From Zygnema circumcarinatum SAG 698-1b (Eukaryota; Plantae; Zygnematophyceae): a stretch of DNA of 64,000 bases. Below, piece by piece: positions 791-17,304 of this stretch (position 1 is its first letter; each line of letters begins with the position of its first letter). The position numbers and the translations under genes were made by a program. The stretch lies in assembly GCA_037447605.1 (NCBI GenBank), contig CM074805.1, forward strand, positions 2,761,361 to 2,825,360, read 5' to 3'. The notes beneath the pieces were generated by a model that was not told the origin of the DNA, searched no databases, and was given only the letters and a program-made list of their open reading frames with translations.

Positions 791-2399
791 GTCTTCTTGC
801 CTATAGCATTTAGACGTCCTTATCTCACCAGCTTATAGACAAAAGATTTCTGAGAAGACAATTTCATTGTAATGACATTCCCCAGCCAACCGCTGGCTGG
901 GGTGAGTTTCCAAAATACCACCTTTAGCTAAGTTGTGTCCTGTTTTCCCTTTGCTGTCACTATGCCAAGCCCCTATCTTGCTCTATCCTGCCTTGCATTC
1001 CTCTCAATGACCAATGATCACTAGAAGCCTAGCTAAGAGACCAGCCGCAGGAGAGGACAGTGGGAGGAGAGTCCCAAGGAAGGGTTTCCCTTATGCGATC
1101 GTCCAGCTCACGGCGGGGAACGTGCCTTCGTAATCCCTACGCCTTCACGCTGGGCATCAATCCCCTGACCCCGGCTCTATGCCGCAGCGTACTCCACGCC
1201 ACTACCCTCCCCAAATTCCTACGCCGCCAAAGACGGACGCCGGGTGGCCGTGACATAAAGATTCCTCGCAACTAGCTCTCGCCAGCTCTTCTCTCAACCT
1301 ACCTATCTTGGTATCGAGTCGGGTTTCGCGCAGATCCACGCATCTTGATAATGCGGAGGGCTTCATCCTCGTGCGGACCGTCAGTTCATGGATGAAGAGT
1401 CGCTGTTAGCAGGGACAGCGTATCTTCATGAGTATTCGATGAAGACTTGGCACCTCAAGAAGAAGAAGAACAAAGCATCGGAAATCCAAGGATCTGGATC
1501 TCGCACTGCAGAAGTTGTAGCGCCAGAGTAGATCGGCGATGGGCATCACCGGCGAGAACCCTTTATCCCAGCCCCGCTTACCTTGAGCCAGATCGAGTCG
1601 ACAAGAGTCAGAACGAATTCGCCTCTGCCAGTTGACGGGCCACAAACTTCGCTTCCGCGAATACGCGACGCCGGACGATCAAGCTTCGCAAACCGCCTGG
1701 GCCGCCAGCCGCCACGTCAGCCGATGCCGCGGAAGAGAGGAGTGCTGTTCAACCTGAGGTCCCCACCGCTGCCCTTACGTATATCGTAACTCACTCTGGA
1801 TCCTTACCTGGATAACCATCGCGACCAGGATCCTTCAAGCACCGCACGCAAGACGCTAGCCCCACAGCAAGGGAATCATCGCAAGACACCCTCACCCTCC
1901 CGCCACGACTTACCCATCCCGCTACCCCCACAGCGAAGCTGGGCTTCGTAAGGGTGCGGCGTGATCTATCGCGATGGACTTCCGCCGAACCAACCTCGCC
2001 AGAGAAGCACACGGTGAGTCGACCGAAGTTCCCCAAAGAAGATGGAAGAGATGATGACAAACTCGATAGCCTTGATAAAAGAGTGAGGTGAGGGGATGTA
2101 CCACGCGCATCATCACTGAGGCTTCACCTGTGAAGATGCGAGGCTTTACCGAGACACCTTGAGGAGTAGCTGCGCAGCCGGCAAGCGCACTGGCGAGGAC
2201 CAGCGGGATCAAGCTATGCCTGAGCGCTTTGAAGGCAAGGTACTAACCGAAGCCGCCCCAACCGCACAAAGCGTATGTCGCCGCCACCCTCATTAAGGGA
2301 CACATTCAAGCAAGCTTTCAGACAACGTTGGATTTCAGATCCGATCACTGTGTGTAGCGAAACGCTATACATGTGTTGTACGGCCTAGTACTTACATCC

Positions 2400-2471
2400 G
2401 CGGTTGCCTTTTAATGGTAAAGCACTGGTGTGGGTACCGGGAGGTCTTGTGTTCAAACCTTGCAGTTGGCA
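2400..2471 (+). ncRNA. tRNA-like module in the TRIM 5' LTR (second copy at 2713-2784)
   Basis: D-arm-like TTTT-AATGGT-AAAG, anticodon-arm-like CTGGT-GTGGGT-ACCGG, variable region GAGGTC, B-box GTTCAAACC (2451-2459), and possible acceptor pairing CGGTTGC/GCAGTTG. The T-stem is degenerate. Confidence 0.65.
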
Positions 2472-2483
2472 GGTTTGTTACAT

Positions 2484-2497
2484 TGGTATCAGAGCCA
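2484..2497 (+). promoter_or_regulatory. Primer-binding site complementary to the tRNA-iMet 3' end
   Basis: TGGTATCAGAGCCA lies 1 nt after the LTR end, the canonical plant iMet PBS. Confidence 0.93.
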
Positions 2498-4039
2498 GTG
2501 CCCGGTATTTGCGATCCACCCTAAAAACACCGTGATCTCCGAGCATGGTACTGTTGGCCAGAGGGTCTGAACCGTAGAGAGGGGGCATGGGGTGAAGGCT
2601 TCATGCAGCTGCGTGAAAACCCTTGAGCTGTATGCTCGAGGACGAGCACGGGTTTAGGGGAGGACTGTAGCGAAACGCTATACATGTGTTGTACGGCCTA
2701 GTACTTACATCCGCGGTTGCCTTTTAATGGTAAAGCACTGGTGTGGGTACCGGGAGGTCTAGTGTTCAAACCTTGCAGTTGGCAGGTTTGTTACACTGTG
2801 CTAGACCGACTTCGCTACATAGAGTGCTGCTGTTGATGAGCGGGCCGCTCAATTACCAGCCGCTGCGCGCATGGCAACACGACCGGCGAACTTGCCTCGA
2901 CTTCTTCCGGCGTTCCAGCGCTGGTTCTCCGGCAAGGCCATCAAATACGAGAAGGATCTCCACCTGGATCGTGAGCTGCGAGACAACCCACCAGCAGATG
3001 CCCAGGCATTGTTACACAGGGCAGAGCGAATTCAGAAGGATCAAGAGAGAGGCAACCGACATGTACGACCACATTACATGAACGCTACAGATCCACGACA
3101 AGATCGACTCTACCAGCAGTTCCTGAAGACACAGAATCAACAGTTGTTCGATCCCTACGCTACATCTATGTTGAATTGGTTTCCCCTGAAGTGGTTCTGA
3201 AACCACTCGTAGAGGATAAGGGGTCGTAAACCGAGCCCCCTCTCGTCGTGTCTTCTCCCGTATTCATCTCGGCCATGATGACTACCGTGAGCCAAGCAAG
3301 AACTGCGGAGACAAAGTGTAAGAGAAAAAGCCCACCGCCGAAAAACCTCTTCTTTATACAATGAAAGATACAATGTGCGTGCAAAGATTCTACTCCCACT
3401 CGCTCTATCCTTACTTACTAAGCGTTGCTTGTGCGTGCTGCCCCCGACTATTCTTCACTCTTCTCGCTCTTACTACTTCCACACGGAAGCATCGCCCTTG
3501 TGCAAGAGTAAAAGGCGGAACCTCCCCATAAAGGTTCGTGAGTGTTCCTGAATCGATCAAGATTCAGATATAAGCTTTCCCCTACGAGCGAAATTTTTAT
3601 GTAGCTGGGCGGCCGCGACCTCGTCACGTTGCCACATGCAAGGGCTGAATCGCCCCTACGTGGTCGCCACCACCATGGACGCTTCCGCGGCGCCAAGGCG
3701 CCGCCTGCGTAGTTTTCCACGGGCCAGGTAAGGTTTCACGGGAGCTTTACCTCGCAGCTGAGTGCGCTTCCGCCGCTTGCCGCCAGCGCTTTCAAAACGC
3801 TGCTTTTTCGGTGTGCGCTAAACCTTCTCGCTACTGGATCAAATCGTTTGCCAGTTCGATTGCTGGCCCGCTGACCAGGTCACGCCGGCCCGCTCATTAA
3901 TGCTTCCTCCCAGCCCTTAGTCGCTGCCGCTACAAGCCGCCGCTGCCCTGCGACGCCAACAAATGTTCGCTCCGTCACGCCACGGTCCCGCGGAACTTTA
4001 ACTTAGAACTTCAAGGCTCACGCCTCAAGGCCACCAACC

Positions 4040-6043
4040 TTGTCGCCAGCGCCCTCACAACAAGTTCTTCATGTCATAGAGAGACTATGTCCCATAAGTT
4101 GTACGGTCTCTATAGCCGTACAACAATCTACTCGGAACAAGCCTTCCTTCTCCGGCGTCACTGCTCAGGACGTCCGGACAGCCCCTGTGGTGCAGCCTCT
4201 GGCCATAGCCAGCACAACCAAGCCCCTTCCCCTTTCCCCATACCCTCATGATCCGGCGCATCCCATTGAGCCGGCGGTGAATCCTCACATACCAGATGTT
4301 TCTCGTCCAGGATATCGGGCTCCTTATTCCGATCGCACACCCGAAGAGAGAGAAGCTGCCAGGGCCGATCTGCGCCGTCGGATGACAGAGGCAGGGGTTC
4401 CGGAGGGCGTATGTCTTGCCTGTGGCCTGAATCATAATCCGCGGCTGCGTTGCGAACCGTGGACCTGCACCTTCTGCCAGATCACGGGACATGATGCCCG
4501 TGTGTGCATGCGGAGACTCTCAAGTGAGAAGGCCCGGAAGGGGAAAGAGGCAGCAGCAGGGAACTCACCTGCAGAGATCACCTTCATGGATATGCTCCCG
4601 GCTGCTCCCACACCACCGAGAACACCGGGCTCCCTTTCTACCGCCCACCTCCTTCACCGCCACACCATCCTCAAGCAATCCACCACCTATCCATCTCCAC
4701 TTCCATGGACTCCCTTCCTCGCCAAACGATTGGGTGCCGGAGTTCATCCGCTGCCCCATCACGCGACTGCCCAGGTTGCCGCTGCATTTCAAATCGCTTT
4801 ATCGGGACCCTCATCACTTCGCTGATGCTCAAGCCCGGATCGCCGAGATTGCAACTGCCCTTCGCAGGCTCCCGGTCAACCGAAGCGATCCTCATTCTCA
4901 TCCCCTGCCATTCCTCCCTGTCAATGTCAACGGCGCCAGTTCCTCGGGTACGGCACCACCGGTCGCCACCCCTGTCCGAAGAACTTCAGTCATCCCTCCC
5001 TTCACGGGTCATCCCTTGGGATCCCTGCCTGAGGAGGAAATTGAAGATCTCAATGAAGAGGAGCCGACAGCGGCGCCGCCAGAGCCGACGCCACCGGCGA
5101 CCGAAGAGATGCACGTCAACCCTCCACATCGTCCTCGAGCAGCCCGTTTCTACCCCCAAGCAGCCGATCGTCGACCACCCCCCCCGACAGACGGCCTATC
5201 CCTGATAGAACGCATGGTGCATCAACTCATGGGAGACAAGGCTAAGATCGGCATTACCTTGTCACAGTTGATGCAGCTTGTACCAGGTGCTGCCGCCGTA
5301 GTTCGAAAGCTGGCCGACAGTGCAGAGGCCACCCTGCGGCCTCCCACAGCTCATATGACATCTCCTCCGGACGTCCCCTCGCCGGCCGATATCCACCACA
5401 TGGCTACGGCGTCTCCGCCGGACCCAGTCCGCTCCCCTCGCCATCCTCCTCGCCAGATTCAGATCCTCCCTCTCATCCCAACGCCCAACGTGCGGATCAT
5501 CGTCAATGTATGGCTCAACGGTCATCCCAGCAAAGCCATGATCGACACGGGGGCTATGCGCACAGTTCTGTCCAAGCCTGTGATGAAGGCTGCAGGGGTT
5601 AAGTTGGACAAGACACTTGAGCCCATTCCCCGATATGTGGGGGTTGAAGGGAGCTTACATGAAGGATTGGGCAGCGCCCAAGTGGTCATCAGTCTTGGCG
5701 AGATGGGAGCCACGGTGAATGCGGTCATCACGGCCGCTGAACACTATTCTATCCTGCTGGGCTCAGATTGGCTCATCGCGATGGGAGCACAAATCGACTT
5801 TGCTACATGTCAACTGCACTTATCTGCTGGCGGAACAGACTGCTCCTTCCCATCATCCTCAGTCCCTACCACTTCCGCTTCCTGCCGTTTCATCACACGT
5901 ACAGGTTCCTACCGAGATCACTCATGTACCATTCTGGCCTACAGCCCCATTCTTCCTACATGGATCGGCCACCCTGGATACCGATGACTCCAGACCCCTC
6001 CTTCTTCTCCGAAGTCCAGCTCTCTAAGTAAGGCCGAATGGAG
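4040..6043 (+). mobile_element. Ty3/gypsy gag-protease region, frame-broken and truncated by an N gap
   Basis: ORF 4040-4825 has a zinc knuckle CTFCQITGHDARVC (CX2CX4HX4C) plus a second Cys/His cluster. Overlapping ORF 4491-5987 has a retropepsin motif AMIDTGAMRT and ILLGSDWL. Confidence 0.88.
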
Positions 6044-6143
6044 NNNNNNNNNNNNNNNNNNNNNNNNNNNNNNNNNNNNNNNNNNNNNNNNNNNNNNNNN
6101 NNNNNNNNNNNNNNNNNNNNNNNNNNNNNNNNNNNNNNNNNNN

Positions 6144-6172
6144 ATACAACCCATGTATAGCGTTTCGCTACA
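6144..6172 (-). mobile_element. 5' terminus of another TRIM-family LTR, truncated by a gap
   Basis: Reverse complement TGTAGCGAAACGCTATACATGGGTTGTAT matches the TRIM LTR start TGTAGCGAAACGCTATACATGTGTTGTAC at 27/29 positions. Confidence 0.88.
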
Positions 6173-6177
6173 ACTAC

Positions 6178-6360
6178 TGTAGCGAAACGCTACAGTCACC
6201 CCAAGGGGGAAGGGTTACTTAGAGCCCGGCGTGGCTTTATGTTTCCATCCAATGCAGTACCTAACGGTTAGGGCATCGGATACCCTATAGGACGACAGAG
6301 GTCCTAGGTTCGAACCATAAGAACTGGTTCACCCGTGGGGCCGCCACATAATCTCTATGG
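6178..6360 (+). mobile_element. Second tRNA-like LTR family, copy 1 (5' end)
   Basis: Starts TGTAGCGAAACGCTACA. A-box-like TACCTAACGG at 6258-6267, B-box GGTTCGAACC at 6307-6316. Near-identical to 7477-7601. Confidence 0.8.
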
Positions 6361-6726
6361 NNNNNNNNNNGGGAATGGGGCTGCCATCAGGGATAAAAGA
6401 CTCTTGTTTCTTAGACCCCTGGACATTCTTAACTTGGTGGGCAGGCTTTTGGGAGTGCAAGATCTCTTTGTGTTTGATGTACTCCCTTCTTCCATTTCTC
6501 TTTCCCCTGCCACTGTAGTGACTCCTTCTGGGTTTATGGATGTAGTGATGAATGGTGATTGGCATGTCTTTATCCTCAATGTCATGGGCGATGATGTTCT
6601 CATGCAATGTGCCATGGATGCTTTGCATGTCATGGGAAACACCTCCCATGTCCTTGGGCTGCATGTGCTGGTTCCTCAGCACATGGCAGTTCGCACCTTT
6701 CCCAACGCCACTTGGCGGTTGGTGAA

Positions 6727-7466
6727 ACAGTTGAGGNNNNNNNNNNCTCAGGGGTACCATCAAATCCGTGTTACGGAAGCTGATGTGCCAAAAACTGCGT
6801 TCCGGACGCCGATTGGTCACTTCCAATATAAGGTGTTGCCCTTTGGATTGACTAATGCTCCGGCGACTTTCCAGGCTGTCATGAACGAGTTGTTCATCGG
6901 CATGGACGAATTTGTTTTGGTTTACCTCGATGATATCCTTGTCTTCAGTAAGACAGAGGAGGAACATCTTGAACACGTTCGGAAAGTGTTTGAGACCTTG
7001 AGGACACACCAGTTTTATGCCAAGAGGAAGAAGTGTCACTTCATGCAACGTGAGTTGCTTTATCTTGGGCATATTCTCAATGATCAGGGCCTTCGGCCTG
7101 ATCCTGCCAAAGTTTCAGCGGTAGAAACTTGGGCACCACCGACTGACTTGCATCAGTTGCGGTCTTTCTTGGGATTTGCGAATTATTTTCGTAAGTTCAT
7201 CCAAGGGTTTAGTAAGTTGGTTACTCCCTTGACTAATTTGACACGTTCCGGTGTCCCCTTTACATGGACCCCTGAATGCCAGGATGCATTCGAAGGTGTG
7301 CGCCATGCACTTGTTACCGCACCCACTCTCCGTTTAGCGGACCCGTCCAAGCCTTATGAAGTGGTTTGTGATGCTTCGGGATTCGCCTTGGGTGCCGTCT
7401 TGTTTCAAGATGGTCAGCCTCTGGCGTATGAAAGTCGCAAAATGAATCCCGCTGAGCGCAACTATT
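6727..7466 (+). mobile_element. Ty3/gypsy (chromovirus-like) reverse transcriptase-RNase H fragment between N gaps
   Basis: GYHQIRV...KTAFRT...PFGLTNAPATFQ...VYLDDIL...RSFLGFANYFRKFI...CDASGFALGAVL...AYESRK. Confidence 0.96.
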
Positions 7467-7476
7467 NNNNNNNNNN

Positions 7477-8171
7477 GCCCGGCGTGGCTTTATGTTTCCA
7501 TCCAATGCAGTACCTAACGGTTAGGGCATCGGATACCCTATAGGACCACGGAGGTCCTAGGTTCGAACCGTAAGAACTGGTTCACACGTGGGGGCACCAC
7601 ATAGTCACGGTGCGCCCCACACCAGCAGCCAAGGTCCCCTCCTCGGCTTAAGGGAGGATTGGGGATTACCGGCACCACGGGACCAATCCGGTCCCGCGAT
7701 TGGATCTCGGGCCGCGGCCCGGATCCCCCTTTTGGAATTCGCCGTTCGTCCGTACAATTACGGGTACCGTTGAGTACGAGACGGTAACCCGATCCGAACC
7801 AGCGCGCGCCGGATCGACACCCGTGCGATGTGCAATGGCGCGCTCGCCCGGCTTGTGAAATGCGGTGAGCGTTAAATGCGTTATACACCTCGACCCATTC
7901 GGGTGAGAGAGGATGCGATGTGACCGCCATTGGGCGACCACGCTTCCCGATCCTCCCATCTTGGTAGGAGGTTACGTGAGCGTAAAGGGGCGTGGGTGAC
8001 TGTCGTCACCCAACCAACGTACCGGCATACGGTTGCACGCCCATCTCGGGCTGCTCCCCACTCTGAAGCGCTCTCTCTCTCTCTCTGAATCCCTCCCGAT
8101 CTGAACTCTGTTTTGCTGAGTGCTGGTGTGTGATTCCGCGTAGGCTGAAGAGGCAGATCTCAGCTGTTACA
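7477..8171 (+). mobile_element. Second tRNA-like LTR family, copy 2, continuing into ~570 bp that ends TGTTACA
   Basis: A-box-like 7511-7520, B-box 7560-7569, CT tract near 8070. Ends CAGCTGTTACA directly against an interrupted RNase H codon stretch (nested insertion). Confidence 0.75.
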
Positions 8172-9045
8172 GGTGATGAAGTTGGAGGAGTACAATGTAC
8201 TCAAAGTCACTCACCGTCCCGGCCGTAGTCACGGCAATGCTGATGGCCTCAGTCGCAATCCCTCGGCTCCCCTCCTCTGCCACGATCCGGCCGTTCTTGA
8301 ACCCATCCCTCCACCCACCCCTCGCCCAGAACCACGGCATGCTTCCGGCAAGAGATTTTTTATTGCGCTCAAGCCGCATGAGTATATATTCGCGAGATGG
8401 GCTGTCGATGGCCTAAATCCACCAGCCCCAGAGAGACCACGACTTCACCAGCCACCCCATGCGGATAAAGTAGAGAACTCCTCATGGATGGCGATGGCGG
8501 CGCTCACTTACTTCCTCCCATTTCAGCGCCAGCCAGCGTCATTCCGAGACTCCTCCCTTACGCGCTTCGTCACTTGACCCTTGCGTTACCCCCCCTTTAT
8601 CCACAGAACACCGAGAACTGCATTTGCTCCGCGCTCACCGAACTTCTCTGTCGATGATGACGGACAGATTCTTTACCTCCCCTCCGGCCTTCCTGTTCCA
8701 TTCCCTAACGAGCGTATGGAAATTCTCGACGTCGCCCACGATTCCCAACCTGCAGGCTTCCACCTCGGACAGAAGAAGATGGTGGCCCTGTTGCAGGAGC
8801 GCTACTATTGGCCCGGCCTCCATGGCGCGGTGAGCCGCTACATTGAAACCTGCACCCGCTGCCAACGCGGCAAGCGCTCTTCTCCCCCCGACCGCCAACC
8901 CCTCGAGATGGGTGAGATCCCAATACGCGGCGTCGCCGAAGACTGGAACATCGACACCTTTTCTATCCCCCAACTCGGCACCCCCTCTAGCTACATTCGG
9001 GTCTTCCTAGCCGTGGACAGATACACCAAGTGGGTAGAGGTTCAC
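8172..9045 (+). pseudogene. Gypsy RNase H end plus integrase (second family), with one in-frame stop
   Basis: VMKLEEYNVLKVTHRPGRSHGNADGLSR, then HHCC zinc finger (AHDS..GFHLG..YYWPGL..CTRCQ) and core WNIDT...AVDRYTKWVE. In-frame TGA at 8575-8577. Confidence 0.9.
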
Positions 9046-9055
9046 NNNNNNNNNN

Positions 9056-9554
9056 TACGGCCGGGACGGTGGGTGACCTTAAGCACATTATACTCCTCCA
9101 ACTTCATCACCCATCGTGCAAACTTAGGTCGTAGGGTAGCCATGATGTGCAGCCAAGTGAGGGGCATGTGGTCAGTCCGGATGATAACGGGCTGGTAGGC
9201 CGTGAAGAGCTTGAACTTCTCGAGTGCCCAGAGGATAGCCGCGGCCTCTCCCTCAGTAGGGCTATACTTGGTCTCGGTTTCTGAACAGACCCTGCTTGCA
9301 AAACTGACCGGGTGTTCCCCATCTGAGAATGCTTGGCTGGCCACTGCCCCAAAGCCTGTCTGACTCCAGTCGGCGTCAATAATGGTGGGAAGGGTGGGGT
9401 CAAATTGATGCAGGCAAGGAGCCTGAAGGAGGGCACTCTTGAGCGCGTGGAAGGCCAAATCCTGCGCTCGGCTCCATTCGTATTGGACTCCGTGCTTCTC
9501 CAAGGCATGTAGGGGACGTGCGATAAGGGCATAGCCCTTGATGAACCGGCGATA
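9056..9554 (-). mobile_element. Gypsy RT-connection/RNase H fragment, same family as 8172-9045
   Basis: YRRFIKGYALIARPL...IIDADWSQTGFGAV...FASRVCSETETKYSPTEGE...RTDHMPLTWL...KFARWVMKLEEYNVLKVTHRPGR. Confidence 0.93.
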
Positions 9555-9564
9555 NNNNNNNNNN

Positions 9565-9976
9565 GGTAATGCCGATCTTAGCCTTGTCTCCCATGAGTTG
9601 ATGAACCATGCGTTCAATCAGGGATAGGCCGTCTGTCGGGGGGGGTGGTCGACGATCGGCTGCTTGGGGGTAGAAACGGGCTGCCCGAGGGCGATGTGGA
9701 GGGTTGACGTGCATCTCTTCGGTCGCCGGTGCCGTCGGCTCTGGCTGCGCCGCTGTCGGCTCCTCTTCATTGAGATCTTCAATTTCCTCCTCAGGCAGGG
9801 ATCCCAAGGGATGACCCGTGGAGGGAGGGATGACTGAAGTTCTTCGGACAGGGGTGGCGACCGGTGGAGCCGTGCCCGAGGAACTGGCGCCGTTGACATT
9901 GGCAGGGAGGAATGGCAGGGGATGAGAATGAGGATCGCTTCGGTTGACAGGGAGCCTGCGAAGGGCAGTTGCAATC
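9565..9976 (-). mobile_element. Second near-identical copy of the gag-protease linker (homologous to ~4848-5260)
   Basis: IATALRRLPVNRSDPHSHPLPFLP...GDKAKIGIT matches the + strand copy with only a few substitutions. Confidence 0.93.
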
Positions 9977-9986
9977 NNNNNNNNNN

Positions 9987-11589: not shown

Positions 11590-11835
11590 CATGCTTCATC
11601 CCACGCACATGAGGCATGAGGTCATGATTAGGCCATGAGGTCATGATGCTATAAGGTCATGATGAAGCCATGATGCCATGAGGTCATGATGAGGCCATGA
11701 TACCATGAGGCCATGATTCCATGAGGTCGTGATGCCATGAGGTCATGATGAGGCCATGATGCCATGTGGCCATATGAGCCCTTGAGGCCATATGAGGCCA
11801 TGGTGCCATGAGGCCATGAGGCTATATGTGGCCAT
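11590..11835. repeat. Degenerate ~8-bp CATG-core minisatellite (CATGAGGC/CATGAGGT/CATGATGC)
   Basis: More than 20 imperfect units read directly. Confidence 0.85.
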
Positions 11836-12030
11836 GAATGCCACGATGTCCATTTGGCATTCGGTCATCGCACGCTCGGGGACCCGGGCTCCGGCTGGAA
11901 AAGAAAGAAGAAACCACGAGGGAAGCGAAGGGGGCATGCGTCAGCAGGAAATTAGGGTTTCCTGCAGGCCGCCTTTCTGCTCGCCACGTGGCCTCTCTGA
12001 GTCGGAGCGAGGCACTGCTGGGGCCTCGTC

Positions 12031-15578: not shown

Positions 15579-15649
15579 GTCAAAGTGGCGGATTGATTAC
15601 GCAACTGTTGTAAAACAGTAATAAAGGGGTTCAAATCCCCTCTTTGACC
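15579..15649 (+). tRNA. tRNA-like cloverleaf copy 1 (GTA variant), 6-nt anticodon loop; probable pseudo-tRNA
   Basis: Acceptor GTCAAAG/CTTTGAC, D-arm GCG..CGC, anticodon arm ACTGT-TGTAAA-ACAGT, T-arm AGGGG-TTCAAAT-CCCCT. 71 nt. Confidence 0.75.
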
Positions 15650-16835
15650 TGCACTGTTTATTCATTCTTCCATTTTTATTCATTTATAGTTTTTGTGTTT
15701 GTGCTTCATGTCTTATATTTGTTGTTATTTTTCCTAGTTCTTTTTATTGCTTTTTGCCTTTTCCTTCAAAACTTACGTTTTACGTTTTACATCATATTTT
15801 GTTTTGAGCATATATAGGTAGTTTGCTAACAAAATTATGCCGGCACACTCAGGAAAACCCGTCTTCTTTGGTTTTTGGAAACCTTGGTGGTATTAGCAAC
15901 CATTCAGGATAACCATGATCAAGTGCGGCAATGGGCTGTATTTGATGCCATCAATACAATTATAGAATCCCTTGTAACTGCGTGTGCTCAAAATCCAAAA
16001 CGTCCGGACTTAGGAGAAACAAGTTGATAAAGGTGCAATTGATTCAACAACAATACAAAAAATATCATTAGAAAAAGAATGATCGACGTGTGGGCTAAGG
16101 AGGGACAAAGTGGGCGGGGGTGGGAAGAAGAGGATCAACAAGAGAGAATGGAGAGGGTTGAGATCCACTAAAGAGGAGAGCGAGAGTGAGTCGGGAATAA
16201 GCCATAAGAGGGAGACAACAACAAGAAGATTGTAAGGAAGGGGCAAAGAACACAAGATGCTAAGATGTCACATACTAAGAGGGGGAAGGAGACACACGGG
16301 GTAGAACAGGAAGGGAAGTGACAGAAAAAAGAGAGGGCAAGATACAGCAAGGTAAGCGAACGAGAGATAAGAAGGGAGGGGACAGGAAAGGGGGGGGGGG
16401 GAAGATGGAAGAACAAGGCAGGGAAAAACAATGAATGGAGCGTGAGAGGGAGAGAGAGTGGGAGGGAGGGAGCAAGTGAGCACACGGATACAAACATGAG
16501 GAGAGATGGGCAAAAGAAAGGGTCGCAGGTGGCAAACTAGACGGACGTCTATATGAATAATCTTAACAGACAGGAAGACAGTCTGTCTGAAGACCAGCCG
16601 TTCAAATGGAGTTTCCAAACACCAAGCTGCGAAGAGAGTGAGAAACAAAAAACAAACGCACCAAGGCCAGCATACAGAGAGGAGGAAGCGGGTGAGGGAT
16701 GGGGGGAATGCACAAATAACAAAAGTGAGAATGGGAGAAAGAGGGCACAAAGAGGGGGGAGGGGCAGAGAAAAAGCAAAAGCACAAACACAAAAACTATA
16801 AATGAATAAAAATAGAAGAATGAATAAATCGTACA

Positions 16836-16906
16836 AGTCAAAGAGGGGATTTGAACCCCTTTATTACTGTTTTGCAACAGTTGCGTAACCAATCCGCCAC
16901 TTCGAC
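16836..16906 (-). tRNA. tRNA-Cys(GCA)-like cloverleaf copy 2, 6-nt anticodon loop
   Basis: GTCGAAG-TG-GCGGATTGGTTACGC-A-ACTGT-TGCAAA-ACAGT-AATAA-AGGGG-TTCAAAT-CCCCT-CTTTGAC-T. U discriminator as in tRNA-Cys. Confidence 0.8.
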
Positions 16907-17233
16907 ATAATGGGGAGGGGGAGGAATAACATTCAATCATACACAACACAAGCATAGGCAGAGGAACGGGCAGCAGAAGAAGAAGAAAAGGCAGCAGCAG
17001 CAGAAATAGCAAAAGCAGAAAAAGAAACAGCACAAAAAACTGCAACAGCATGAATAGCAGCAGAAACAGCAGCACAAAACAAAATATGGTATACAAGGTA
17101 TTCAAAGTTTTGAAAGAAACTCAGAAAACAAAAAAAAACANAACTAAGATAAATAACCACAAATATTTTACATCAAATGCACAAACACAAACACTATATA
17201 TGAATCAAAATAAACAAATGAAAAAATAGTACG

Positions 17234-17304
17234 AGTAGAAGAGGGGATTTGAACCCCTTTATTACTGTTTTGCAACAGTTGCATAACCAATTTGCCACTT
17301 CGAC
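17234..17304 (-). tRNA. tRNA-Cys(GCA)-like cloverleaf copy 3, 6-nt anticodon loop
   Basis: Same fold. D-stem is GCA/TGC and the acceptor has one mismatch. Lies 398 bp from copy 2 in tandem. Confidence 0.75.

Follow-up and report, generated by a model that had tools for sequence, protein, structure and literature searches.

A decayed tRNA- or SINE-derived block in a long terminal repeat beside a Ty3/gypsy reverse transcriptase fragment of Zygnema circumcarinatum

Can a protein-coding Ty3/gypsy retrotransposon have a tRNA-like block of its long terminal repeat (LTR) in common with a small non-coding neighbour? The question is raised by positions 6178-8171 of the window, the 64,000-nt stretch of Zygnema circumcarinatum SAG 698-1b analysed here (assembly GCA_037447605.1, contig CM074805.1, positions 2,761,361 to 2,825,360 of the forward strand), which is eukaryotic DNA rich in repeats. 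Two copies of a tRNA-like LTR lie there on either side of a Ty3/gypsy reverse transcriptase (RT) fragment, and a terminal-repeat retrotransposon in miniature (TRIM) lies upstream. The sequence-only reading took the locus for an autonomous gypsy with a tRNA-type promoter in its LTR, a kind of element not known to have been described, and for a candidate partner of the TRIM. In our analysis, the locus is what is left, in broken form, of one or two LTR retrotransposons of the Ty3/gypsy type, and the RT fragment is most simply their own pol, a reading for which we see an even chance. The features that carry it are these:

6178-6360, plus strand: long-LTR copy 1, the initial 183 nt of the LTR; its head is that of the TRIM and 130 nt are common to copy 2
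6178-6194, plus strand: hairpin head of copy 1 (fold -8.4 kcal/mol, z -4.2)
about 6255-6325, plus strand: tRNA-derived block of copy 1, within the long LTR
6747-7466, plus strand: RT-A, the C-terminal two thirds of a Ty3/gypsy RT and the start of RNase H, frame from 6749
7477-8171, plus strand: long-LTR copy 2, LTR positions about 47 to 741, a single contig without N with the 3' end TGTTACA
about 7508-7578, plus strand: tRNA-derived block of copy 2, within the long LTR

The two motifs by which the LTR had been recognised each have exactly two occurrences, as had been reported (6258/7511 and 6298/7551), and 6224-6353 aligns with 7477-7606 over 130 nt, ungapped and with 94.6% identity: the initial 70 nt are identical and the following 60 nt have 7 mismatches. 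On nucleotide comparison, the copies are demonstrated to be the same repeat over 130-137 nt only. Copy 1 opens at 6178 with TGTAGCGAAACGCTA, exactly as both TRIM LTRs do (2353, 2666), and this 15-nt head has 6 matches in the window, with 0.94 expected by chance; the LTR head is a 17-nt hairpin, TGTAGCG-AAA-CGCTACA, with a 7-bp stem. A start in common with the TRIM, which had been claimed for both copies, is therefore seen for copy 1; the start of copy 2 falls in the gap 7467-7476, as the tail of copy 1 falls in the gap 6361-6370. The other end is preserved in copy 2, which does reach TGTTACA at 8165-8171, in an unbroken contig from the tRNA-like block onwards; these final 7 nt are also those of the TRIM's LTR end. 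Homology to the pol of an unrelated gypsy, family B, begins exactly at 8172, and since this pol resumes there, 8171 is the true end of the element. The LTR is about 741 nt long (46 nt of head from copy 1 and 695 nt in copy 2), not about 170 nt. Within its tail, 7607-8171, there is no second copy of the tRNA-like block, and the open reading frames (ORFs) of the tail have no Pfam match. There is no polypurine tract in the left flank of copy 1 and no primer-binding site (PBS) in the right flank of copy 2; these types of flank fit a 5' LTR followed by a 3' LTR.

Two parts of the family-B host element lie on either side of the inserted material:

4040-6043, plus strand: gag and protease of the family-B gypsy, which form the upstream portion of this host element (aspartyl protease families, E 3.9e-09)
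8172-9045, plus strand: family-B gypsy pol, the RNase H end and the integrase zinc finger (Integrase_H2C2, E 2.3e-17)

From 8172, the plus strand reads VMKLEEYNVLKVTHRPGR..., followed by the integrase zinc finger. An uninterrupted copy of family B, inverted at 9056-9554, reads ...FARWVMKLEEYNVLKVTHRPGR, and its part at 9056-9160 (minus strand) crosses the junction; this RT/RNase H piece is 91% identical to 8172-8227 over an overlap of 56 nt. The alignment shows family-B pol to be the target into which the long-LTR element inserted.

RT-A lies between both LTR pieces and on the same strand. Its frame is open for 239 codons without a stop (6749-7465) and matches RVT_1 at profile positions 77-205 of 205 (E 1.3e-28) and RT_RNaseH_2 at profile positions 1-72 of 100, in agreement with the description of an uninterrupted RT-RNase H piece between two LTR copies. 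RT-A has only 35% identity to the RT/RNase H of family B; its closest relatives outside the window are 61-65% identical (word search). The low identity and the position between two family-B pieces identify RT-A as foreign material inserted within family B. We put the probability that it belongs to the element with this LTR at about one half.

The element with an LTR of about 741 nt thus inserted into the pol of family B, and its own pol is most simply seen in the RT/RNase H fragment that the scaffold places just upstream, in the same orientation. The assembly would then have broken at the repeat edges, and gag, protease, the RT N-terminus, the RNase H end, integrase, PBS and polypurine tract would have been hidden or lost. 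The tRNA relic would be a passenger module in U3, held in common with the TRIM by inheritance.

What is the tRNA-like part of this LTR? The block occupies LTR positions about 75-150. ARAGORN at default thresholds finds no tRNA in it, Rfam finds no tRNA and no other family in 6144-8200 or in the TRIM (gathering score and E<=10), and the block's minimum-energy fold has no cloverleaf. Relaxing ARAGORN to 70-80% thresholds gave inconsistent calls on both strands, which we discarded as noise. At the level of single arms, direct reading shows 3 of 5 T-stem pairs kept, and upstream, at the right distance, there is a D-arm-like CCTA/TAGG stem and then GGTTAGGGCA; anticodon arm and acceptor stem are unrecognisable in the block. 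The B box agrees with 8 of 9 specified consensus positions in both copies; the A box, at its proposed site, agrees with 5 of 9, and an equal or better chance match exists elsewhere. The similarity of the D-arm-like stretch to tRNA 5' halves is only about 2 standard deviations above shuffles, with the observed score reached by 14-17 of 300 shuffled sequences. The B-box 19-mer is genuine variable-loop/T-arm sequence, identical to the T-arm regions of real tRNAs: a slightly degenerate pattern of it has 125 sites in metagenome contigs, of which 43 are tRNAs according to ARAGORN (Ile-TAT, Met-CAT, Val, Lys and others) and many of the remainder are repeated tRNA-like sequences that look like short interspersed nuclear elements (SINEs). 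The block is a decayed tRNA- or SINE-derived relic, not a tRNA.

The same 19-mer is common to several abundant families of repeated, tRNA-like and SINE-like sequences in environmental eukaryotic contigs. Of the 120 loci of the metagenome 19-mer scan (L001-L120), none matches the LTRs, the TRIM or the 366-nt piece (6371-6736) over more than 20 nt; one of the families (for example L020, L024 and L032) matches the long LTR over 20 nt. The tRNA-Cys-like modules at 15579-17304 of the window were considered as relatives of the block and rejected, as they have only generic tRNA features in common with it.

How far the pieces can be joined depends on the gaps. There are runs of N at 6044-6143 (100 N) and, with 10 N each, at 6361-6370, 6737-6746, 7467-7476, 9046-9055, 9555-9564 and 9977-9986, which makes seven placeholder gaps inside 4 kb. 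The locus itself is made of four contigs, 6144-6360 (217 nt), 6371-6736 (366 nt), 6747-7466 (720 nt) and 7477-9045 (1569 nt), so the caution that N gaps separate all pieces was well placed. At the gap 6361-6370, the left side is LTR position 183 and the right side is unlike the remaining LTR of copy 2 and has no PBS. At 6737-6746, no RT, protease or gag model of Pfam matches the left side (6371-6736), and the right side opens at RVT_1 profile position 77 of 205. At 7467-7476, the left side ends within RNase H, at RT_RNaseH_2 profile position 72 of 100 (protein end ...AERNY), and the right side opens 46 nt into the LTR, as gauged from copy 1; if one element is assumed, the RNase H end, the whole integrase and the polypurine tract are therefore missing at this gap, well over 1 kb. 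The sites at which PBS and polypurine tract would be expected fall in the gaps 6361-6370 and 7467-7476. The listed ORF 6335-7543, which crosses all pieces, is an accident of placeholder length.

Several observations weigh against this reading. They involve three further features:

6144-6172, minus strand: inverted head of a TRIM-type LTR, truncated by the 100-N gap 6044-6143 (27 of 28 nt match the TRIM LTR starts)
6173-6177, no strand: spacer of 5 bp, ACTAC, between two LTR heads, the left flank of copy 1 (direct reading)
6371-6736, no strand: 366-nt contig between two gaps, with one open frame per strand

The sequences flanking the three 10-N gaps of the locus are non-continuous at each gap. 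Gag, protease, the RT N-terminus, the RNase H end and integrase, together at least about 2.5 kb, are absent between the LTR pieces, and the window holds just one RT-A and no further long-LTR copy. The 5-mers flanking the LTR pieces differ (ACTAC at 6173-6177, GGTGA at 8172-8176), so there is no target-site duplication; left of ACTAC lies the inverted TRIM-type LTR head and no family-B pol. The two copies diverge towards the 3' end, with 4 of the 7 nt just before the gap being different, and copy 1 could belong to a different subfamily or have a shorter LTR. The 366-nt piece has an observed/expected CpG ratio of 0.18, compared with 0.78-1.10 for the neighbouring pieces, and nothing was found for it in Pfam, in two atlas searches or, with the minus frame, in a word search and in HMMER against 1.84 billion representatives; the plus frame was covered by Pfam and the atlas. 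Outside the 17-nt head, the similarity of the TRIM LTR to the long LTR (score 52.5) is not above that of shuffles (44.0 +/- 5.3).

Given the different 5-mers, a single simple insertion does not have these two LTR pieces as its ends: they derive from a recombinant or from two elements. A recombinant of two elements could also account for the missing family-B RT; alternatively, the 217-nt contig could be misplaced. The autonomous gypsy that had been proposed thus fares differently in its parts: order, strand and type of flank fit LTR-RT-LTR, and the gaps, the absent coding parts and the unequal 5-mers speak against it. With 239 codons of pol and a gap at every joint, a self-sufficient single element cannot be claimed from this locus.

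Could the scaffold instead be a patchwork, in which family-B pol truly contains only the 7477-8171 tail, either a solo LTR or a non-coding element's 3' LTR, and with RT-A, the 366-nt and the 217-nt contig being repeats of other elements that read-pair links placed here with arbitrary 10-N spacers? The number of placeholder gaps in so short a stretch would be expected, as would the short inverted family-B pieces of which the scaffold beyond 9045 consists, the CpG depletion that sets the 366-nt piece apart from all its neighbours, the unmatched 5-mers and the fact that the contig of copy 2 starts exactly with the stretch common to copy 1, as happens when an assembler breaks at repeats. Against a patchwork, RT-A and both LTR pieces are on one strand and in the order of one element; moreover, RT-A is not family B and is hence part of some insertion here if the scaffold order is right. 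We consider this explanation unlikely but of real weight. The alternative offered by the sequence-only reading itself was that of a second TRIM family whose LTRs, about 171 nt long, end with CCACA (6348/7601). The TRIM LTR does align end to end with 6178-6348, the final ACA included, and the copies diverge sharply soon after CCACA; yet neither copy has a PBS after CCACA (the Met PBS pattern occurs in the window only in the TRIM, at 2484), the similarity goes on for at least 5 nt beyond it, and copy 2 extends 570 nt more to its proven end at 8171 with the block not repeated. A second TRIM family is accordingly quite improbable.

The tRNA-like block leads to two further explanations. If the 130-nt repeat were the head of a tRNA-derived SINE, present as two independent insertions and unrelated to any LTR, both the A/B-box-like layout of the block and the wide distribution of its B-box 19-mer among repeated SINE-like metagenome sequences would follow. 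We regard this as improbable: the contig of copy 1 has the TRIM's LTR head, at 6178, ahead of the repeat, copy 2 finishes at a proven junction of insertion with TGTTACA, as the TRIM's LTRs do, and the common stretch opens 31 nt before the A-box-like site, at what is merely the start of copy 2's contig and no SINE 5' end. An autonomous gypsy that relies, for the start of its genomic RNA, on an internal RNA polymerase III promoter of the tRNA type within the LTR would fit with the B box of both copies and with the well-placed D-arm-like stem; we judge it extremely improbable, as the searches and the fold described above found no tRNA, the A box is no better than a chance match, and runs of four T, one in the LTR (7730) and three in the RT (6915, 7013 and 7186), would stop polymerase III long before a transcript of several kb is complete. 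The same processivity argument has been made by Kojima 2024 (PMC10886601).

The tRNA-type promoter of the sequence-only reading is not supported by these same data, and nothing in the sequence suggests that the tRNA relic is a working promoter. RNA polymerase III terminates at T runs, though four T may leak, and a coding element would thus need RNA polymerase II for its full-length RNA. If polymerase III transcribed from the long LTR, its product would stop some 230 nt downstream; as this is still within the LTR, the block is in our view a passenger of U3 or, at most, a module of local regulation. The TRIM has runs of four T within its D-loop-like region too (2409-2412 and 2722-2725), and read-through by polymerase III is hard to reconcile with them.

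What then connects the long LTR to the TRIM? The neighbouring element is the following:

2353-2795, plus strand: intact Helenus-type TRIM, upstream of family-B gag

Its LTRs are 130-133 nt long and 98% identical; a PBS of the Met type, TGGTATCAGAGC, starts at 2484, and a polypurine tract and a 5-bp duplication, CTGTG, can be read directly. TRIM and long LTR have three parts in common: the 15-17-nt head, the B-box block and the TGTTACA end. Integrase recognises element ends, and with such ends common to both, a helper-parasite relation is plausible: the common termini suggest that the integrase of the long-LTR lineage could mobilise the TRIM. It is possible, with a probability somewhat short of even, that there is a protein-coding Ty3/gypsy lineage whose long LTR has both the integrase-recognised ends and the tRNA/SINE-derived module in common with a Helenus-type TRIM. 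The fragmented locus alone cannot carry the helper-parasite claim.

Close to the start of copy 1, at 6144-6200, a TRIM-type head and the long-LTR head face each other at a spacing of 5 bp, the length of a target duplication. The initial 15 nt of the inverted head, read as reverse complement, match the TRIM LTR starts (2353, 2666) exactly. The arrangement could result from an insertion at an LTR edge or be an assembly effect of the palindromic head.

LTRs with a tRNA-derived part are known. Helenus (TRIMp3) comprises TRIMs with tRNA-derived LTRs from fungi, animals and one plant (Selaginella); by definition these elements are short and non-coding, under 1000 bp, with LTRs of 120-323 nt (Kojima 2024, PMC10886601). 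Quite many LTRs in Repbase were noted to have tRNA-like parts, although the analysis itself was confined to elements under 1000 bp, and insertion of a SINE2 into an LTR has been proposed as the origin of such modules (Kojima 2024, PMC10886601). No coding partner that has the block in common is described there for Helenus, and it was argued that an autonomous partner needs polymerase II and is unlikely to have a long LTR stretch in common with the TRIM (PMC10886601). LTRs that bear a tRNA-derived block are thus described as Helenus (PMC10886601), and a coding gypsy that has the module in common with a TRIM was not found in the literature.

Like Helenus, the locus has the signs of an LTR element whose TG...CA termini enclose a tRNA-derived block; box B keeps its GGTTC core and the block is no functional tRNA. 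The TRIM at 2353-2795 resembles Helenus further in size, Met PBS, polypurine tract and 5-bp duplication. In contrast to Helenus, the locus has a gypsy RT associated with its LTR, which by itself measures about 741 nt, and its A box is weaker than the TRGCY...YGG of most Helenus elements. In the consensus of Helenus-1_SMo from Selaginella moellendorffii, which has the same Met-type PBS, the tRNA is far better preserved, as judged from a comparison by eye only (PMC10886601).

Similarities to other known systems are more partial. A module of small-RNA-gene origin within the LTR is also found in Cassandra, a group of short non-coding TRIMs whose LTR has a polymerase III promoter of 5S rRNA origin and for which polymerase III transcripts were shown experimentally; the module of our locus is instead tRNA-derived, and it is known from sequence alone. 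With nested Ty3/gypsy elements, the locus has in common the TG...CA ends, gypsy RT/RNase H, the insertion in another element's pol and mismatched flanks as they arise after inter-element recombination; it differs from ordinary Ty3/gypsy elements in the tRNA-derived block and in the hairpin head that it has in common with the TRIM. The decayed tRNA head that keeps its B box is reminiscent of tRNA-derived SINEs (SINE2), as is the occurrence of the same 19-mer in SINE-like repeats, but the block lies inside an LTR with LTR termini and has neither a SINE tail nor a target duplication of its own.

A coding gypsy with a Helenus-like module would be a modest variant of a published theme. Its interest would lie in the pairing: we know of no autonomous helper of Cassandra, and for a helper of Helenus there are only indirect hints, for example internal similarity to a Copia family. 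A coding lineage that has its head, end and tRNA relic in common with the TRIM would make helper and parasite a concrete pair. If real, it would be the first autonomous partner to be identified for a tRNA-bearing TRIM with which it has LTR sequence in common. Such a pair would also bear on the origin of the module, raising the question whether a SINE inserted into a long LTR that was later miniaturised. It would be contrary to the expectation that no long LTR stretch is common to both partners (Kojima 2024, PMC10886601).

Some minor features of the window remain to be described. The 366-nt contig (6371-6736) is CATG-rich and shows no similarity to the tail of the LTR; it is probably not part of the element. 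Downstream of the locus, at 9056-9976, a second copy of the family-B gypsy, inverted, is present as short contigs with 10-N gaps between them, which makes this stretch of the scaffold a mosaic of repeat contigs; besides the RT/RNase H piece, it includes a 412-nt gag piece, inverted at 9565-9976, that is 97% identical to 4847-5258. Further downstream, at 11606-11860, there is a satellite-like run of units of about 8 nt (CCATGAGG / TCATGATG), with 12 overlapping 55-nt copies.

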